A stretch of DNA of 64,000 bases from contig OZ038378.1 in assembly GCA_964036045.1 (NCBI GenBank), positions 184,202,001 through 184,266,000 of the forward strand, read 5' to 3'. Source of the stretch: Eutreptiella sp. 'Long Island Sound 2002'. Its lineage: Eukaryota > Protista > Euglenida. Below the pieces are notes generated by a model. The model was given only the letters and a program-made list of their open reading frames with translations, did not search any database and had not been told where the DNA came from. The position numbers and the translations under genes were made by a program. The first letter of the stretch is position 1, and each line of letters opens with the position of its first letter. Positions 1-7,337 of this stretch are shown piece by piece.

Positions 1-760
1 CAACTCCGTGATCGTCTCAGGGCGCTTCCACTTCTGAATAGCGACGAGCTTCCCTGGACTGGGTCGTCGGGTGCCATTCTCTAGGAGAGAACCACAAAAT
101 TCGACTGATTTTAAAAATAATTTTCCCTTCTTTGGCCCACAAATCAGCTGATTGGCGTCAAGAATGTCCAAAACTTGGTTCAGCTGCTTCTCATGTAGGG
201 CCACCAGCTCGGCTTCGGTCAGTCCCTCCCCTTCCGTCGCGATGATTATGTCATCTATGTACACACTCACGAAGGCACGAAGCTCAGGATGGGTTGTGAA
301 CAGCACATCCTCCATCATTCTTTGAAAAAATGAGGGGGCGTTCTTCAGCCCCATGGGCATGACGGTCCATTGGACTGGGCCACATGGCGTGCACATACAG
401 GTGAGAGGTCGGCTGTCCTTCCTCAACGGCATTTGGTGAAAGCCGTGGCGGAGATCCAGCACAGAAAACAAACGACCTCTTGCCCTCTTGGCGATTTCCT
501 CCTCAATGAGGGGCAGGGGGTGTGAATCCGCCTTGGTTTCGGCGTTGAGATTGCGAAAATCAACAACCATTCGCCAACCATCAATGGTGTTCTGGTCTGC
601 AGGCGGTGGCTTCGGGACTGTGAAGGGTGCACAGCACCATTCGCTGGTCATACAACCCTCAAGCCAACCAAATTCCCTGAGATTTCTCTCGATGATTTTT
701 CTGAGGATCTCATGTTTATGTCCATGGTTCTCATAAGGGCGCTGTTTTTTCGCCTTGTAC
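1..760 (-). other. Reverse transcriptase domain, Ty3/Gypsy type (partial)
   Basis: WRMVVDFRNLN at 576-546 and YIDD at 261-250; left boundary is the window edge, right boundary approximate. Confidence 0.93.
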
Positions 761-2487
761 CCTTCACGAAGCTCGATGAAGGCTTCACCGAACTGTCCAC
801 GGACAGGGGGATCTTTGATCAACTTCCCTGAAAGGGTTGTGTCCTTCCGTTCCTCAAAAATCTTTTCTCTTGACTTGGAACACAATTCAGTGTCCACCTG
901 ATCGCCAGGAATTACTGTCGAAAAAACCTTGGCGACTTCTTCGGCTTTGGCAGGAAGAATCTTCTTACGGATGTCCCTAAACAGGTCCGTATCAACTGCC
1001 TCTTGAAGATAGGTGGGTCGTGTGTCGAAATCCCAGGGATTCTCTTCGTGATCCAGCTCCTCGAAAGGATCCATGAAAGCTTCCACAGGGGGTTTTTCAT
1101 AAAAAACTCTGAATTTGCGGCGCAATTTCGAATTTTTCTTCGCCCTTGCACTGAAGATTCTTTTCGATGTCGATCGTATTGGGGAAGAGGGAGACGAGGC
1201 GGATCCATTGGACGTTGGATCACCTTGGGTATCTGACGGACAAAAATCAGAAAAAATAGATTCATCATCAGTACCACGCTCAACCTCAGATTCAGACCCA
1301 ACACAAGAATCAGTACCAGAATCAGCAGAATTAGAGTCAGAAAGCTTTCCATCCACCAGGAATGCAAGCGAACTCCAGGACCGCTGTGGCAGGGGACCTG
1401 TGTCGTCCCTGGCATACAGCTTAATCTTCCTGGGAAGTTCGATGTAATCTACACAAATGTCTTGTAATTCCTGAAACCAAGGCTTGTCGTCCCACAAAGG
1501 CACAACTAAAATTGCCTGGGTTTTATCTTGCTTGATTTTGTGGATGACCTGCTGGATTAAGTGAAACGGAGGATTAATCCACAACTTCTTGTCCCATTTG
1601 TGGGTCCAAGCGTCGCGAAAGTGCTTGTCAAAGCGCTTGTTCTCGCGGTTAGCAAAGGCATCATACTGTGGCCAAAAGGAATGGTGCTCATGAAAGTATT
1701 CACAAATTGCATCGCGCCATTTGTCGACAACTCTGTAGGATGAAGAGTGCCAGCGCGAAGGGCGTCGTGGCTGGGAGTCCCTACGAAGACATTCTAACTC
1801 TTGGGAGTAATCGGCACTCCCATTCACCTCTGCAATGGTGACATCTTCACCAAATTTTGGTGTCACCTTTTGCTTCAAAAATTCTTCTGCACTTTTAAAC
1901 CCTGCATGCAAAAAACGAAATTCAGGACGCTCCAAGGGACCTGACTCCAGCAAAAAACAACGACGATGACCTACGGGCGCTACCCTGTTCTTGCGAAGCC
2001 AAGGATGGCCCAAATAAAGGTCATACTTTATGTCGGCACGGTAGAAGTAGTCATCCTTAAGGACAATTTCCTCCACATTACCTTCTTCCCAAAGGTCTTG
2101 AGCGACCAAATGAGTCGATATATAACAACCGCGTTGCCCACCTGCGAGAGAATGTCCAGAAACTCCCTCGAGGGTAACAGGATGAGGCGATTCAAACACG
2201 CAGTCGTCGGGTAAGAATGAATTGGATTGGAGATTTACCTCTGATCCATTGTCACACAAACAAGTGGCGAGGTGGAAATTTCCCTTGCAATCAGAGACCC
2301 ACAGCTTTGTGACAAACTGACGGGCCCTGTGCTTGGACTGTACACCAACCTCGTCCACTACAACAGAAGGATCCGCTGCCGGATCCAGGGGAGAGGAGAC
2401 AAGCGACCCTACATCAAGTAATGGTCGCTCTGGAATCTGGGGATCATGCCTGAAATCGCCTGGGGAGGGGCAATTTTCGTGGCTCCC
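1..2487 (-). CDS. pol: pol polyprotein (partial): aspartic protease - N6-adenine methyltransferase - reverse transcriptase; in frame with gag after TAG
   Basis: Manual translation is open from 2487 to base 1 (missing from the ORF track because it runs off the edge). Motifs: CDNGSEVN, YDLYLGHPWL, YDAFA, WINPPF, ILVVPLW, WRMVVDFRNLN, HPLPLIEE, LDLRHGFHQ, MPMGLKNAPSFFQRMM, VYIDDII. Confidence 0.92.
1348..1740 (-). other. DNA N6-adenine methyltransferase domain (Dam-like, DIRS1-type MT) inside pol
   Basis: DAFA at 1662-1651 (SAM-binding motif I-like), DAW..KW, NPPF at 1575-1564 (catalytic motif IV), then LIQQVIHKIK..AILVVPLWDDKPWFQEL, matching the layout of the DIRS MT domain. Confidence 0.85.
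1950..2310 (-). other. Retropepsin-like aspartic protease domain with a D-N-G active-site variant
   Basis: LATCLCDNGSEVNL (D at 2253-2251) and C-terminal YDLYLGHPWL motif; boundaries approximate. Confidence 0.8.
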
Positions 2488-5400
2488 CTAGGCGTTCTGA
2501 CCTCCAGCGGCTGCGTTAACATTGTGAACACAGCCTGATTCGTCGATCCACTCCTCTTGGAACGGATCATCTGCTGGATTCAGGGCATTTTCGACGTAAT
2601 CTCGATCCGCATCGGACACCTGATCTGCACCTGAGACCTGATCCACACGATGGTTGCCCTTTCCGCGTCCACGGCCACGGCCGCCGGATGATGGGCCACC
2701 ACCGTCGCCACGCCCTCTGCCCTTACCAGAGAAAGGGGTTCCTGAAGGATTTCCCTTACCTTTACCCTGTGATCCTGGAGCATTTCCTTTGTTTGTACCG
2801 GATTGAGGGGTTTGGCCTGGATTTCGATTTCCGCCTCCGGCGTTGCCATTGGGACTTGTCTGGCCGTTTGGCTGCCCACCGGAGCCGGATGGAGTCCGAT
2901 TTCCTTTGCCTTGGGACCCGCCAGGGCCTCCAGTATTTTTGTTTCCACCGGAGGGGGTCGGATTACCCTTTCCCCCCTTTGCACCATGCACCTGTCTGTC
3001 ATTCCTGTCTGAATTCTGCGAATTACTGACATTTTCACCAATCACCTTGTGATCATAAGCAGACCATCGGTGATTACCAGTAGAATGCGTCTTAGCTCGG
3101 TTCGTAGAACCTAAAAGAAGGCAGATGCTACAATGATCCTGAACATTCCGGGTGTCATTCACCTTCTTGTTGCCCTTTTGGGCCCCATTTTGGGTGTTTT
3201 GCTGGGTATTCTTGTTTCCCCCAAGACCCTCATGGAAATTTTGATTAGCGGCGTCAGCAAGCCGCTCAACCTCTTCCCACAGTTCCTGCGGGGTGAACGA
3301 AAACACCCAGTTCCTGGCCTTCAGGCGATGGCCGTGGAAACTTACTCCCCTATTGAGGACTTGGACAAACAAGTCCCGATCCTCGTGTTCATTAAACTTG
3401 ATTTTCCACGTGTTTTCAGTGAATTTCACCTTGGTAAACGACGTGGGGGAACACTTTTGAAGTGCTTCCCTGACGGTGAACCTGTTGGCCGAGGCATCAA
3501 AGCCTTCGACCTCTGCCCACCAGGTCTTGACCTTTTCTTTGGATTGTTTATTCCGAAGGGTGGCGGCAGTTTCGGAGGGGATCTTGTCAAAAATCAAATT
3601 TTTCAGCTCGGCACTAGAAAATTTTTCGCCTGAATGTTCAGATTCTTCTACGAGATTCCAGAAGCGCTGTCTCTTGTCTTGCACTTCGTGCAAGATTAAT
3701 CGAGAGAATGAAGGAAAATTCTTCAACATCTGGTGGTAATGGTCCTCTGGCAGCCGGGATCCACGTACCTCCAACTGTTCCCACACCTCATCAAAGGTAA
3801 GGGGGGAACTTGAATCCTCACGATCACTCCAGGTCCGGAGCCAAGTGTTGGCCGGCGCTCCCTCAAGGCAGTCCAAGAGGGCCATCAGGAACTGATCATC
3901 TTGGAGTTTTTGAGTCTTAACCCACAGTTTAAATTCCCGTTGGAACTGAGGCCAACGTCTGGGGTTTCCATTATACTTCGGTTGCTTGGCAACCTGACGA
4001 AGTCGCAATGAGGTAGGATTAAGGAGTGAATCCAGCCCAACACCAGCCGTAATGGCAGACACCTTGGCGGCATCATTAGCCACACCAGCTCCGGCGAGGG
4101 TCTGGGCGAGCAACATCTGGGCTATTGCATTGGAATCAACAGCAGGAAGGGCAGTACGGGAGGCAGTTCGCTTGGCATTCTGAGCCTCAGTCCTAGCCTT
4201 CGCCGACCTACTCTGAGATCGAGAGATTGTAACCCTTTCCTTTAGTTTATTCCTGCTGATCCTGGCATCGGTGGTCTTAGAGTCCACCGAAGGAGCAATC
4301 GAAAAAATTTCTGTCGCCTCCTCCGACGGTTCTGTTGTTTGTTCCACCGATGATGCGCCCTCAGACCGCATGTGTGTCTTGAAAAGATCTTTAATTCCCA
4401 GCGTCTGAATGATGAGTTGCATTTGATCTTTGAGGAATTGGAGCTCAGTATCTCGCTGTAATCTGCAAGAGCAGTCGGCAGGACAGTACATACCGTGTCC
4501 TGAAGGGCCTGAGCAGGCTGTCGGACCGCTAATCTCAGTGGTTCGCAGCCAGGAGTCCACTTGGGGAGCTCCTTCAGTCCTAATTTCCAGGCTTGCCTGC
4601 CTGGCTGCCTCTAAAGTTCCTTCCTCAACCGCGGCGGCTAGATCGTCGCGGATGGAAACAGAGGGATGAGGGGCGGAGGGCCCGGCAACAGGTGCCTTGG
4701 TCTTCTCCTTCGGGAAGGGGCTTGCCTCCCAGATCTGCAAAAAAATGGCAAAAGATTCATCTTCTTGAGAACGCCACCACATCCTGGTATTAATTTCTTC
4801 CTGAAGAAGGAAAAAATATTCAAATGAAAAATCAGAGGCGATTCTTTCTTGACCTATCAGCTTAGACGTGGCTAATGGACAAAGGGCCTCAAGCGCCTCA
4901 AGGTTACGGGTCACTTCTGAAGACAAATGGTTGTCCCATTGTGCCCAAGAGGCTGGTCGATTATAGGTAGGTACCTCAGCTGGACCACCCATCTCAATGT
5001 CGTCAATGTCGGCGTCGATGGTCTCAAAATGTGGACATTGGTAAGGAGTATTAGTACCTGCCAGATCCGTAAGCTCCACCGGAGCGTTGCCATTAGCGTA
5101 GGCTGGGAGATTCCAGCTGCTTGATGGCCAATTTCGACTGGGATCTTGATTGTAATCTGGGCCTCCACAGCTGCTGATTTGTGCCCTTCTTGGGCAATTT
5201 GGGCTTGCGCAAGGCATTCCTCTCAAGGCCTCGTTCGCACAGCACCACGGCAGCGTAATCGTTACGTCTCCGGAGGTGGCGGAGTCTACGGGGCCGTACT
5301 GGGGAGCTAGCTGTGGTTGGGACACCAAAGGAACAACATTCAGGTAGCCTCTGCTACCATGAAAGTGCTGCCCTGGGTCGTTGAGGGTGCCGGAGGGCTC

Positions 5401-5523
5401 GGGGCCGGCAAGACCAGTGGGGCAGGCACGCGAGGAGTCTCCCTGGATGTTGTTATTGGGGGTAGAACCGGATACTCGGACACCAACGGAGGCGAGAGCA
5501 GCAACAACTGAAGCAAGGTCCAT
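2488..5523 (-). CDS. gag: Gag-like protein, 1011 aa
   Basis: ORF track; capsid-type PKYNGNPRRWPQFQREFKLW motif, CSIC-X11-H-X4-H cluster, Gly/Asn/Arg-rich tail; directly upstream of and in frame with pol. Confidence 0.88.
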   Translation of the reverse strand: MDLASVVAALASVGVRVSGSTPNNNIQGDSSRACPTGLAGPEPSGTLNDPGQHFHGSRGYLNVVPLVSQPQLAPQYGPVDSATSGDVTITLPWCCANEALRGMPCASPNCPRRAQISSCGGPDYNQDPSRNWPSSSWNLPAYANGNAPVELTDLAGTNTPYQCPHFETIDADIDDIEMGGPAEVPTYNRPASWAQWDNHLSSEVTRNLEALEALCPLATSKLIGQERIASDFSFEYFFLLQEEINTRMWWRSQEDESFAIFLQIWEASPFPKEKTKAPVAGPSAPHPSVSIRDDLAAAVEEGTLEAARQASLEIRTEGAPQVDSWLRTTEISGPTACSGPSGHGMYCPADCSCRLQRDTELQFLKDQMQLIIQTLGIKDLFKTHMRSEGASSVEQTTEPSEEATEIFSIAPSVDSKTTDARISRNKLKERVTISRSQSRSAKARTEAQNAKRTASRTALPAVDSNAIAQMLLAQTLAGAGVANDAAKVSAITAGVGLDSLLNPTSLRLRQVAKQPKYNGNPRRWPQFQREFKLWVKTQKLQDDQFLMALLDCLEGAPANTWLRTWSDREDSSSPLTFDEVWEQLEVRGSRLPEDHYHQMLKNFPSFSRLILHEVQDKRQRFWNLVEESEHSGEKFSSAELKNLIFDKIPSETAATLRNKQSKEKVKTWWAEVEGFDASANRFTVREALQKCSPTSFTKVKFTENTWKIKFNEHEDRDLFVQVLNRGVSFHGHRLKARNWVFSFTPQELWEEVERLADAANQNFHEGLGGNKNTQQNTQNGAQKGNKKVNDTRNVQDHCSICLLLGSTNRAKTHSTGNHRWSAYDHKVIGENVSNSQNSDRNDRQVHGAKGGKGNPTPSGGNKNTGGPGGSQGKGNRTPSGSGGQPNGQTSPNGNAGGGNRNPGQTPQSGTNKGNAPGSQGKGKGNPSGTPFSGKGRGRGDGGGPSSGGRGRGRGKGNHRVDQVSGADQVSDADRDYVENALNPADDPFQEEWIDESGCVHNVNAAAGGQNA

Positions 5524-5930
5524 GCTGATTGTGGTCCGGCAGAAAATCCCAGTCTATGAAGAAAATTGATGCGAATTATTCTAAATACATCTGAGTGTCC
5601 AAAACTGTCTGAAAAGATTTCAATAATCCAATTATGTAAAAATGTTTAGCCGATCTGGCCCGCGAGCGCGCGTCAGCGGCAAATAGCGATTCCAGCTAAA
5701 ATAGCGGAACGCGGCGGATTTACGGGAAATGGACCGCGGAATCAAATCCGGCATATCAGAAATATATAGGAAATATCCTGAGACTGAGCTGCGAGGCGGC
5801 GATTCCGCCGAAGCAAAGAAAATGACCAAAATGTAGCCAATCTGGGCAGAATGTCTGAAAATCTGAGCAGATGGGGCTAGCTGCACTTACAGGGGTGGAG
5901 AGGTGCACTAAGCTGAATTACAGTACCATT

Positions 5931-6593
5931 TCAGAACTCCTGACCTGTGTCACGCCGTGACACGCGCTCCTTCTTTGGCTTTCTTGTTCTCCTCATCCCA
6001 CGGTGCGTTGTTCGCAGCTCTTCCCCGCCTTCTGGTTCTCCTCCCGGCGTTTCCGGATCAAATCCATAATGTTCCCATACTGGATCCCCAGGTCCTTGAT
6101 ATCCAACAGGTTTGGCTTCAATGACTTCCTTGCCGACCGGCCCGTGTGTCGATGGCATCGTTTCGTCCTCTTGTTCCGGTCCGTGCTCTGCGCAAACCCT
6201 GTATACCGTGGCGTCCGGCGCCTCCTTTGGATCCCATTTCCACGCCGTTTTGAGCTGCAAAACTTGCACGATCTGGTCCTTTGTCATTGTCCGTGAATCC
6301 CAGTGCGGCGCTCTCAGGTGAACTTCACGCATGATCAATGAGACTCGCAGTTCTTGTTCCGTAAAGGGCACTGCGGCCGCCTGTTGTGGTTGCTCATACC
6401 TCCAAACACCATTGATCTTCCAGCTCCAGCGTCCCGTCACGAGATCAAACTGACGCCGTACTCCGTTCTCATCATCCGTAACCCATGTACACTCCGTGGC
6501 AGCGTTCAACAAACTGTCCGGCGCTCGTAGTTGCCGTAGTTGGTGTATTGTTGCCTCCGCCACCGATTCACGTTGTCGCTGGATGCTCATCAC
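5931..6593 (-). CDS. Unknown 220-aa ORF upstream of gag, possibly within the 5' LTR
   Basis: ORF track; complex Trp-rich composition; no recognised domain; GTG/ATG start uncertain. Confidence 0.35.
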   Translation of the reverse strand: MMSIQRQRESVAEATIHQLRQLRAPDSLLNAATECTWVTDDENGVRRQFDLVTGRWSWKINGVWRYEQPQQAAAVPFTEQELRVSLIMREVHLRAPHWDSRTMTKDQIVQVLQLKTAWKWDPKEAPDATVYRVCAEHGPEQEDETMPSTHGPVGKEVIEAKPVGYQGPGDPVWEHYGFDPETPGGEPEGGEELRTTHRGMRRTRKPKKERVSRRDTGQEF

Positions 6594-6892
6594 CGTCTTC
6601 TCCTTCGTACCTTTCGGTCTCGGCTATGCCTGGTTCACCGTGTATCCCTTTCACGCTCGCGTCAGTGGGCCGCCTTCGTCGCCCACTCTCGGAAGCAAAT
6701 GGAATGTAAGTGGACTCGTTCTTGTCTCTTTTTCCTATCACGTGATTTTTGCTCTTCAAAATCTCGCTGCAAAATTTTTCCAGTCTCCTCGTCCACGTTT
6801 CCCTGAGTGTCCCTGCGAGCACAAAAGGGCAGGTCTATGACCTTTATTCATGATAGTTCATTCTGCATCTTCGTAAGTCATAGAACACGACA
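5948..6892 (-). repeat. Candidate 5' LTR (TGTC...GACA)
   Basis: Minus strand starts TGTCGTG at 6892 and ends CGTGACA at 5948, with AATAAA near 6847-6842; no second LTR in the window to confirm. Confidence 0.3.
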
Positions 6893-7337
6893 GTGTTCCA
6901 TTTGCCTGCCTGCAGGCGAAACATGCTGGCATGCAACACAAAATCTTAAAATGTAATAAATCTACATTTATGCATGCCGAAAAATTATTTGTACACTCAA
7001 CACACATCTACTGTTTACTTCTCTCTTTATCTTTCTTCTGTCGTCAGCGACAATCTGGCGCGGGATCTGGCGCGCGCTTCTATCCTGGCGCCGCCTGTCA
7101 CAGAACATCCGGTCAAAAATCCAAAAGATAATCCAAGAAAATCTGTCAAAAAGTAAACTCTGTGTACCTGTCAGGAAAAACCCATTGCATCATGACCTTG
7201 CCTTGTACGTCGTCGGTGTTGGGGATTTGAAGGAGGTTTGTTTGTGTTTTTTGGGGAAATGTTGGATGTATAGGCCAAAGCCCATTGCAATGCAACAAAG
7301 GACTTCAAAAATTATTACAATTTCGAAACGCCCTCAG

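Follow-up and report, generated by a model that had tools for sequence, protein, structure and literature searches.

A complete Ty3/Gypsy-type DAM-LTR retrotransposon with a Dam-like methyltransferase domain between protease and reverse transcriptase in Eutreptiella

The minus strand at the left end of the window, which is the whole 64,000-nucleotide stretch of Eutreptiella DNA analysed here, carries a retrotransposon reading frame in which a domain resembling N6-adenine methyltransferases (MT) is placed between a protease (PR) and a reverse transcriptase (RT). This locus raises the question of whether the MT is a genuine and maintained part of the element, how old its capture may be, and which nucleic acid it may modify.

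As shown in Table 1, the element extends 4.9 kb past the left edge of the window, and its total length is 10,778 bp. The two LTRs differ by 3 mismatches (99.4% identity), a 5-bp target-site duplication, ACCCC, is present on both flanks, and the LTR boundaries are identical in 5 further copies. The primer-binding site presumably pairs with the 3′ end of a tRNA of the initiator-Met type, and a polypurine tract, GGAGGGGGAG, directly precedes the 3′ LTR. The element is a complete, recently inserted and apparently autonomous copy of a very abundant LTR family, which is assigned as Ty3/Gypsy (Metaviridae) chromovirus-like on the basis of its domain order and Pfam families.

Table 1. Features of the element in window coordinates, or in neighbouring coordinates where they lie beyond the window.
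Feature	Position	Strand	Remarks
5′ LTR	5360..5891	-	532 bp, TG...CA; self-BLAST
Primer-binding site TGGTAGCAGAGG	5348..5359	-	directly after 5′ LTR; read from sequence
gag ORF	2491..5523	-	1011 aa from first ATG; start ATG within 5′ LTR
In-frame UAG	2488..2490	-	single, at gag/pol boundary; candidate stop-codon readthrough site
pol ORF, first 829 codons	1..2487	-	open throughout window
Retropepsin-like protease domain	1888..2331	-	homologue alignments; structure model and Foldseek
Dam-like (PF05869-type) N6-adenine methyltransferase domain	1342..1767	-	142 aa, pol 241-382
DAFA motif	1651..1662	-	D42 and F44 of 47-homologue alignment
NPPF, catalytic motif IV of N6-adenine methyltransferases	1564..1575	-	alignment, genomic copies
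Acidic Ser/Asp-rich low-complexity linker	808..1341	-	pol 383-560, between MT and conserved pre-RT segment
RT core (RVT_1), YIDD box	91..615	-	pol 625-799, E 1.8e-25
RNase H	L013:3464-3868, beyond window	-	RT_RNaseH_2 match at pol 874-973
Integrase core (rve)	L013:2354-2566, beyond window	-	pol 1308-1378
Chromodomain PF00385	L013:1634-1747, beyond window	-	pol 1581-1618
3′ LTR	window-equivalent -4886..-4355 (L011:5114-5645), beyond window	-	self-BLAST

The gag and pol genes lie in one frame and are separated only by the UAG codon. A GGGGAG...CTCCCC hairpin is located directly 3′ of this codon (about 2455-2487), and the UAG and its context are unchanged in all 5 copies in which the junction was located. 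The gag product shows a weak match to DUF1759 and has a C-terminus rich in Gly/Asn/Lys and in RGG. An Rfam scan of the window gave no match.

The pol frame, described as uninterrupted in the preliminary description, is indeed open from 2487 to 1 and continues beyond the window to a pol of 1727 aa (to window-equivalent -2693; L013:1307-6487, minus strand). From its N-terminus, it encodes a retropepsin, then the Dam-like MT and a disordered acidic linker, then RT, RNase H and a DDE integrase, and finally a chromodomain. The model of the protease has a pLDDT of 90.2, and its top Foldseek matches were all retroviral or DDI1 retropepsins, with a best E of 2.6e-4 and a probability of 1.00; its active-site loop reads DNGS (2242-2253; LCDNGS at 2242-2259), where the distant homologues have DTGA. 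With this protease fold upstream and the RVT_1 match downstream, the MT does lie between a retropepsin and an RT, as had been described. The RNase H, the DDE integrase and the paired LTRs expected of a full element were all found, although the rve match (E 1e-6, 29.3 bits) is slightly below its cut-off of 32.6 bits; the chromodomain match, at 27.4 bits, exceeds its cut-off of 25.1. The Pfam scan of pol gave no match to Phage_integrase (tyrosine recombinase) and no DNMT. Matches to Phage_integrase exist in the host genome.

The bounds of the MT domain were set by a profile of its homologues, and the segment 1348-1740 marked in the preliminary description falls inside them. The motifs named there were found in their places, where DAFA and NPPF are followed by the ILVVPLW..KPWF stretch and then by the Ser/Asp-rich linker. 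Across 47 aligned homologous domains, the F of DAFA and the second P of NPPF are invariant, and the D of DAFA and the N of NPPF are each conserved in at least 90%. DAFA is presumed to be the equivalent of the SAM-binding motif I. When the 151-aa MT segment was compared by phmmer with 1.8 billion representatives, 1623 hits had E≤1e-3, and 124 of these reached E≤1e-10, so the domain is not a matter of chance.

The match to a Dam model that had been anticipated was obtained at the level of the homologues and in a weaker form for this copy. The Pfam Dam profile (PF05869) matches this copy with E=1e-4 and 22.2 bits, which is below the gathering score of 28.1 bits, and the match covers profile positions 10-106 of 169, leaving the C-terminal third unmatched. 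Among the aligned homologous domains, 42 of 47 match PF05869 at E≤1e-3 (best 8e-13), and the homologues P0016, P0022, P0027, P0050 and P0023, which phmmer finds at E 1e-15 to 1e-23, pass the cut-off with 29.5-39.7 bits. The domain also matches phrog_111, annotated as 'DNA methyltransferase', and the nearest ESM Atlas cluster carries PF05869. A word-indexed protein search with the MT region alone returned clusters of 964 and 4843 member sequences, and nothing outside this same family. The MT shares profile homology, the same conserved motif order and a small single-domain form with the phage-type enzymes of PF05869 / PHROG 111, but it forms part of a retroelement polyprotein and, in this copy, scores below the gathering threshold. 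Hia5/Hin1523 were also considered as members of PF05869, a membership that would have suggested activity independent of sequence, and were rejected, as a published paper relates the Hia5 family to E. coli and T4 Dam.

A search of the MT profile against PDB chain sequences gave a chance-level match only (E 0.11, a DUF4827 protein), and therefore a comparison of folds was needed. To our knowledge, PF05869 has no member with a solved structure, and because of this the fold evidence comes from more distant methyltransferases. The AlphaFold2 model of the MT domain has a pLDDT of 89.7 and a pTM of 0.86. The significant Foldseek matches are all SAM-dependent transferases, nearly all of them methyltransferases, and are led by PCIF1 (E 1e-4), followed by KsgA/DIMT1, RlmJ and M.TaqI. 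The same holds for the functionally annotated matches listed by VIA-align, where the Z values are 10.0 for PCIF1, 8.2 for METTL5, 8.1 for DIMT1, 7.3 for both T4 Dam and E. coli Dam, and 7.1 for M.TaqI, a range of 7-10 that is middling by the tool's own grading. N6-adenine enzymes head the match lists. Judging from the model, we are confident that the MT would adopt the class-I (Rossmann-like) SAM-methyltransferase fold.

The best structural match, PCIF1/CAPAM (PDB 6irx, 6irw), is aligned over 135 residues with an rmsd of 3.6, and the catalytic tetrapeptide of PCIF1 is also NPPF. However, the identity is 13%, and PCIF1/CAPAM, a host enzyme acting on RNA, has 700 residues and includes a helical domain for cap binding; the likeness is one of resemblance and not of membership. 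The structural ranking bears on an alternative in which the MT acts as an adenosine-N6 methyltransferase on RNA or on an RNA:DNA hybrid, not on dsDNA, and would mark the genomic RNA (internal m6A or cap-adjacent m6Am) or the hybrid formed in reverse transcription. PCIF1 is first in both Foldseek and VIA-align, PH1948, METTL5, DIMT1, ErmC′ and KsgA outrank T4 and E. coli Dam, 3 of the 47 homologous domains match Pfam PCIF1_WW, and the MT adjoins the RT within a polyprotein that is packaged together with RNA. On the other hand, the gap in Z is small, and the lack of a solved PF05869 member biases the ranking toward the content of the PDB. N6 enzymes acting on DNA and those acting on RNA share the pattern (N/D)PP(F/Y/W), and the sequence profiles (PF05869, phrog_111) favour phage DNA methyltransferases.

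Further evidence on this alternative comes from a preprint of May 2026, in which DAM-LTRs are defined, including chromodomain-bearing ones in Euglena gracilis (Fernandez-Moreno et al. 2026; bioRxiv 10.64898/2026.05.21.726589). When DAMs of DIRS elements, DAM-LTRs and adintoviruses were expressed in dam-deficient E. coli, 6mA was not raised, and the authors raise an RNA:DNA hybrid as the substrate; however, DAM-LTR copies are reported there to be enriched in DNA 6mA. We consider the RNA or hybrid enzyme to be an unlikely reading. If true, it would mean a retroelement-encoded, PCIF1/METTL5-like epitranscriptomic writer acting on its own genome or replication intermediate, and it would account for the negative heterologous DNA assays of related domains.

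The element itself is bracketed by an outer pair of 485-bp direct repeats detected by self-BLAST. An artefactual origin of the PR-MT-RT order, be it from a nested fragment of a DIRS element, a chimera of the assembly or a capture unique to this copy, would be in line with the nesting of this copy in another repeat-flanked element and with the caution, given in the preprint, that some Euglena DAM-TE architectures may be nested insertions or assembly artefacts (Fernandez-Moreno et al. 2026). However, the same uninterrupted frame is found in dozens of dispersed copies, in a second family whose MT shows 36% divergence, and in remote proteins of the databases; the element has normal LTRs and no tyrosine recombinase in the pol scan, and the outer repeats are absent from 5 other full-length copies. 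The outer repeats belong to a host element that was the target of this insertion, and a reading of them as DIRS/PAT-like split direct repeats was rejected by the same absence. Given the many independent identical copies, an assembly chimera of the pol frame is very unlikely, and the artefactual origin as a whole, to which we assign a negligible chance, is already refuted by the comparison of copies.

The family is very young and present in high copy number. Among 3726 candidate DNA matches to the element, 40 were scored, and all 40 were at 98% identity, in addition to the near identity of the LTRs. Of 150 Dam-domain matches that were scored, about 60 lie within open frames of 1722-1757 aa, and the full pol is kept in 5 of the 7 copies examined. 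Both ORFs and NPPF are intact in this copy, as had been noted, and the MT, present in many copies and in the second family, is not confined to a single decaying copy. Contigs of RNA libraries match positions 1231-1615 and the LTR; these are metatranscriptome contigs of 150-350 bp for which DNA carry-over is possible, and their identity over the MT region is about 96-97%. Sequence words of the element also occur in estuary and sediment metagenomes. A spliced-leader 24-mer of the E. gracilis type was counted 5458 times in the genome and its reversed control 0 times, which marks the genome as euglenid. Three loci of the MT-A70 family (PF05063), which may include the AMT1 gene expected in a DAM-LTR host, were found in the host genome at C18:42.93 Mb, C18:43.30 Mb and C5:3.05 Mb.

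The conservation of the MT was evaluated between this family and a second one, family B, represented by the intact element L035, since copies that are 98% identical differ mostly by decay after insertion, which would be uninformative. As dS is saturated between the families (pS about 0.8 in every segment), only pN and amino acid identity are quoted. The MT has a pN of 0.27 and an identity of 64%, and the identity is 61% in the protease, 53% in the chromodomain, 39% in the spacer between protease and MT, and 44% in the linker. This indicates that the MT domain and the protease have probably been maintained to about the same degree over the long term between families.

The same comparison bears on the alternative that the MT is no longer catalytic and is kept as a structural, nucleic-acid-binding or cofactor-sensing module, for example as a spacer between protease and RT or as a dimerisation unit. 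The size of the domain, a minimal core of about 140 residues, and the negative assays in the preprint (Fernandez-Moreno et al. 2026) would be consistent with such a module. However, DAFA and NPPF are intact in both this family and family B, with NPPF intact in 18 of the 19 genomic copies parsed, and at least 90% of the 47 divergent homologues retain the catalytic Asn, and at least 90% the motif-I Asp, a pattern that is predicted by selection for catalysis and not for mere folding. We regard the loss of catalysis as quite improbable, and we hold with moderate confidence that the MT domain is catalytically active.

The MT is homologous to that of the DIRS1 group, with which it shares the pattern DxFA ... 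W ... NPPF ... VPxW, and the DIRS-order homologues P0121 and P0142 match it at a phmmer E of about 1e-10 to 1e-9. In DIRS1 elements, the MT follows RNase H, a tyrosine recombinase is used without protease or DDE integrase, and the repeats are inverted or split, whereas here the MT precedes the RT and is accompanied by a retropepsin, a DDE integrase, a chromodomain and ordinary LTRs. Membership of the DIRS1 group was rejected on the presence of rve, the absence of Phage_integrase matches from pol, the ordinary LTRs and the position of the MT before the RT.

The order seen here recurs among the database homologues, where P0016 and P0115 carry Dam-RVT_1-RNaseH-integrase, P0023 and P0030 carry RVP-Dam, and P0027, P0034, P0050, P0062 and P0124 carry Dam-RVT_1; in nine homologues, a DTGA retropepsin lies upstream of Dam. 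In a tree of 102 related MT domains, computed without a prokaryotic outgroup, this domain falls among the entries with Dam before RT, apart from a clade of five entries with RT before Dam (DIRS order). Because PR-Dam-RT is common to at least two families of saturated divergence here and to distant database homologues, the capture of the MT is probably old and not specific to this element. The independent capture or module swap proposed for this element in the preliminary description is thus not upheld.

Nor is the architecture new. Dam and RT lie in one ORF of a non-DIRS LTR element, as in the DAM-LTRs already described, including those of E. gracilis (Fernandez-Moreno et al. 2026), and this copy is a clean further example and no new kind. 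As described there, where two Euglena clades are distinguished, the E. gracilis DAM-LTRs are likewise Ty3/Gypsy-like, with a DIRS-derived, prokaryote-like Dam with a conserved Asn-Pro-Pro pocket in pol, a C-terminal chromodomain, a euglenid host and a high copy number. The 'EpiLTR' of the same text differs in that the present element has no DNMT. The PR-Dam-RT position, the layout with a candidate UAG readthrough and the DNGS protease variant are seen here and are not stated in that text. The cytosine-methyltransferase retrotransposons (de Mendoza et al. 2018, PMC5890265) likewise supply a DNA-modifying enzyme of their own, but this is a C5-DNMT, an enzyme of another family that sets a different mark. 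Very probably, the present element is a DAM-LTR whose MT domain is kept by selection.

The overall best explanation, with a probability of roughly 0.8, is a young DAM-LTR. Its Pol-borne MT would methylate the intermediates or the new insertions of the element itself. In such a process, Gag-Pol would be made by readthrough of the UAG codon, and the MT would enter the particle as part of Pol, where it may either be freed by the protease or be kept tethered to the RT via the flexible linker. It would then methylate adenine N6 on nascent cDNA, on the RNA:DNA hybrid or on newly integrated DNA, and, following the proposal of the preprint (Fernandez-Moreno et al. 2026), new copies would carry 6mA, which in the host goes with permissive chromatin. 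The assignment of the element's own DNA or hybrid as the substrate is tentative, with chances somewhat below even. The earlier reading of a protease-released 6mA writer is not supported, and the heterologous assays of the preprint were negative.

Conceptually, this locus adds nothing beyond the preprint (Fernandez-Moreno et al. 2026). Its value is that of a fully annotated, intact reference copy, in which the LTRs, target-site duplication, primer-binding site, polypurine tract, candidate readthrough stop and every pol domain are placed. A young and abundant family, together with a second family diverged to saturation, makes a test of conservation possible, and the structural pull toward RNA N6-adenosine methyltransferases such as PCIF1 and METTL5 sharpens the question of the substrate. 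Retrotransposons with their own DNA-modifying enzyme indicate that mobile elements can manipulate the epigenetic code of the host, besides evading it.

As shown in the table below, the pol frame lies on the minus strand and runs open from just past the gag stop to position 1; with the left-flank DNA included, it comprises 1727 codons. The preliminary description had listed a retropepsin, the DAFA, NPPF and ILVVPLW..KPWF motifs, an acidic linker and an RT in this frame, all of which are present. In the full element, pol also contains RNase H and an integrase (rve), and paired LTRs are found. The integrase is not replaced by a tyrosine recombinase, as rve was matched and Pfam found neither a tyrosine recombinase nor a cytosine methyltransferase on the 1727-codon pol. 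The structure model of the domain upstream of the methyltransferase (MT) has a pLDDT of 90.2, and its structural matches are retropepsins only (DDI1, RSV, HIV, FIV and XMRV proteases). The active-site loop D-N-G-S is the same in family B, the second family of such elements in the genome, and in the database homologue P0004, and a canonical D-T-G-A retropepsin lies directly upstream of Dam in nine more distant homologues.

Features of the element. Positions are those of the window; negative values are window-equivalent positions left of its edge; L013 is DNA fetched from the left flank.
Feature	Position	Strand	Source
LTR pair (532 bp each)	-4886..-4355 and 5360..5891		self-comparison
PBS, TGGTAGCAGAGG	directly 3' of 5' LTR		
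gag stop (UAG)	2488-2490	minus	
Hairpin GGGGAG...CTCCCC	about 2455-2487, directly 3' of the UAG	minus	
pol, 1727 codons	2487 to -2693 (L013:1307-6487)	minus	
Retropepsin-like stretch, LCDNGS	2242-2259	minus	sequence read
Protease loop D-N-G-S	2242-2253	minus	
DAFA motif	1651-1662	minus	sequence read
NPPF motif	1564-1575	minus	sequence read
ILVVPLW..KPWF block, then Ser/Asp-rich acidic linker	pol frame	minus	sequence read
RT with YIDD box	pol frame	minus	sequence read
Dam (PF05869)	pol residues 255-340		Pfam
RVT_1	pol residues 625-799		Pfam
RT_RNaseH_2	pol residues 874-973		Pfam
rve	pol residues 1308-1378		Pfam
Chromo	pol residues 1581-1618		Pfam
PPT, GGAGGGGGAG	directly 5' of 3' LTR		

The LTRs start with TG, end with CA, are 99.4% identical and differ from each other at three positions, and a 5-bp duplication, ACCCC, flanks the element. 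Because five of six other copies have exactly the same boundaries, the element length is 10,778 bp. Counted from its first ATG, which is within the 5' LTR, gag has 1011 aa, and it shares the frame of pol, with one UAG between them. All 5 other copies with a located junction have the same UAG and context, and the minimum free energy of the 70-nt context is −20.5 kcal/mol; by analogy, the UAG and hairpin look like a candidate MLV-style readthrough site. At window 5360-5553 (minus), the open frame of gag lies inside the 5' LTR, as does its first ATG (5523), a putative start codon, and the frame continues across the end of the LTR and through the PBS; Ty1 offers a parallel, as its gag also begins in the LTR. 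The stretch of about 1.66 kb from the pol stop to the polypurine tract (-4354..-2697; L011:5646-7303 in a second left-flank fetch) has no long ORF, the longest stop-to-stop stretch being 111 codons, which makes the 3' untranslated region unusually long for an LTR element. Outer direct repeats of 485 bp, 99% identical (-6787..-6303, L011:3213-3697, and 6705..7189), enclose the copy and about 2.2 kb of other sequence, including a 220-aa ORF at 5931-6593 (minus). They are absent around five other full-length copies, which rules them out as part of the family; the copy was probably inserted in a small non-autonomous LTR-type element bounded by these repeats.

Whether the MT segment is METHYLTRANSFERASE was examined by sequence, conservation, Pfam, other libraries and structure. 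When the 151-aa segment was compared by phmmer with 1.8 billion cluster representatives, 1623 matches reached E<=1e-3 and 124 of them E<=1e-10. In an alignment of 47 such domains, F44, W64 and P73 are invariant, and Y17, D42, A59, W69, N71, K83, P96, W98, W103 and W137 are conserved in >=90%; the window copy has every one of these residues. Against the Dam profile PF05869, the window copy itself, at 22 bits and E 1e-4, stays below threshold, but E values are 1e-3 or lower for 42 of the 47 domains (best 8e-13), and several of them exceed the gathering score. The PHROGs match is phrog_111, 'DNA methyltransferase', and the nearest ESM Atlas cluster is annotated PF05869. The AlphaFold2 model made with the alignment has a pLDDT of 89.7 and a pTM of 0.86. 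In a Foldseek comparison with PDB structures, PCIF1/CAPAM comes first (E 1e-4, TM 0.57), followed by KsgA/DIMT1, RlmJ, ZCCHC4 and M.TaqI. An independent VIA-align search gave Z scores of 10.0 for PCIF1 (135 residues), 9.0 for PH1948, 8.2 for METTL5, 8.1 for DIMT1, 7.9 for ErmC', 7.3 for both T4 Dam and E. coli Dam, and 7.1 for M.TaqI; among the matches listed, all those with functional annotation are SAM-dependent transferases, nearly all methyltransferases. Taken together, the sequence, conservation, Pfam, library and structure matches identify the segment as a compact class-I SAM-methyltransferase domain, predicted to be of the N6-adenine kind, and its sequence makes it a homologue of the phage Dam family PF05869.

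The ranking of PCIF1, METTL5, DIMT1 and Erm above the Dam enzymes is a fold-level likeness that fits the main rival reading, in which the substrate would be RNA or an RNA:DNA hybrid, as does the negative outcome of DNA assays of related domains, where dam-deficient E. coli expressing them did not gain 6mA (bioRxiv 10.64898/2026.05.21.726589). However, the sequence homology is to phage DNA methylases, and more 6mA was reported on the DNA of such elements in two ichthyosporeans and Euglena gracilis (same preprint); we consider an RNA or hybrid substrate unlikely. A non-catalytic role is disfavoured and seems quite improbable, as the catalytic Asn and the motif-I Asp are conserved.

In the 2.28-Gb assembly, where the window occupies G000:C1:184202001-184266000, a DNA search with window 1-2500 gave 3726 candidates, and all 40 scored were 98% identical. 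The many identical independent copies exclude an assembly or nesting artefact as the source of the protease-MT-RT order. Of 7 copies that were read over their whole or almost their whole length (window copy included), 5 keep the entire pol frame and 2 keep both ORFs; with a related Dam domain as query, about 60 of the 150 matches scored lie in open frames of 1722-1757 aa. The domain is thus not confined to one decaying copy, with NPPF in 18 of 19 copies with a parsable motif and an intact 1728-aa pol, in the same domain order, in a family B copy (L035). The exception, KSPF, occurs in a decayed family B copy (L029, G000:C5:89064912-89065361), which is the public cluster representative P0002; its relatives all carry NPPF, and sequence comparison indicates that this copy alone has lost the catalytic Asn. 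Between the window family and family B, synonymous sites are saturated (pS ~0.8). At the protein level, RT is 85% identical between the two, RNase H 82%, IN 73%, MT 64%, the protease 61% and the chromodomain 53%; the protease-MT spacer reaches only 39% and the acidic linker 44%. By these identities, MT has changed about as little as the protease and clearly less than the segments on either side of it, which argues for purifying selection on MT through a long period of retrotransposition. RNA-library matches to the element are short metatranscriptome contigs only, and words of the element were found in estuary and sediment metagenomes.

Domain orders of relatives were obtained by Pfam scans of longer database hits. 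The Gypsy order appears as Dam-RVT_1-RNase H-integrase (P0016, P0115), RVP-Dam (P0023, P0030) and Dam-RVT_1 (P0027, P0034, P0050, P0062, P0124); the Copia order as rve-Dam-RVT_2 (P0028) and, with Dam assigned by the alignment profile, upstream of RVT_2 (P0055); and the DIRS order as RVT_1-RNase H-Dam (P0121, P0139, P0142) and Dam then Phage_int_SAM (P0114). A maximum-likelihood tree was built from 102 domains, arbitrarily rooted, with few rows labelled and without a prokaryotic outgroup. It unites the five DIRS-order rows in a single clade (support 100/66), and these rows stay on one side of a branch in every bootstrap tree; all Gypsy-order and Copia-order rows are on the other side. P0001, P0002/family B and P0004-P0006 are grouped with the window MT at 99/95 support; P0001 and P0002 match the genome at 100% identity. 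Within its scope, the tree argues that protease-Dam-RT is an old, shared architecture. The preliminary description had proposed an independent capture by this element, which is at odds with both the tree and the occurrence of this order in distant homologues.

Its claim of novelty is likewise pre-empted, because Fernandez-Moreno et al. (22 May 2026, bioRxiv 10.64898/2026.05.21.726589) described adenine-methyltransferase domains, by their own account the first, from non-DIRS LTR retrotransposons, and named these elements DAM-LTRs. They inferred at least four transfers from DIRS-like into Ty3/Gypsy-like elements, and described a Euglena gracilis DAM-LTR/DIRS group, chromodomain-bearing members and a conserved Asn-Pro-Pro pocket. 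The window element shares with them the MT in an LTR element, the chromodomain and Asn-Pro-Pro.

MT-A70-family loci, possible AMT1 orthologues, are also present in the host genome. Matches to Phage_integrase (tyrosine recombinase) number in the dozens; they lie in open frames of 580-730 aa and cluster at C16:21.8-22.3 Mb, C25:20.65-20.97 Mb, C22:19.45-19.53 Mb and C23:11.93-11.99 Mb, some of them being mirrored duplicates on different contigs. They may represent YR-element arrays or viral regions that have become endogenised. A 24-nt query, which we take to be the Euglena-type spliced leader and use only as a lead, occurs 5458 times on both strands (e.g. C1:29492-29515), versus 0 for the reversed control, which points to a euglenid host. 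The matches listed on C1 are dispersed and irregularly spaced, not solely in tandem arrays, a pattern that suggests SL-RNA genes scattered through the genome or retroposed copies that carry the SL.

Beyond the established anatomy, fold, motifs, conservation and copy number, we propose that readthrough of the UAG would yield Gag-Pol, and that MT would enter the particle within Pol, either freed by the protease or tied to RT via the ~180-residue disordered linker. It would then methylate adenine N6 on the replication products of the element, and new insertions may so gain a mark that the host links with permissive chromatin.
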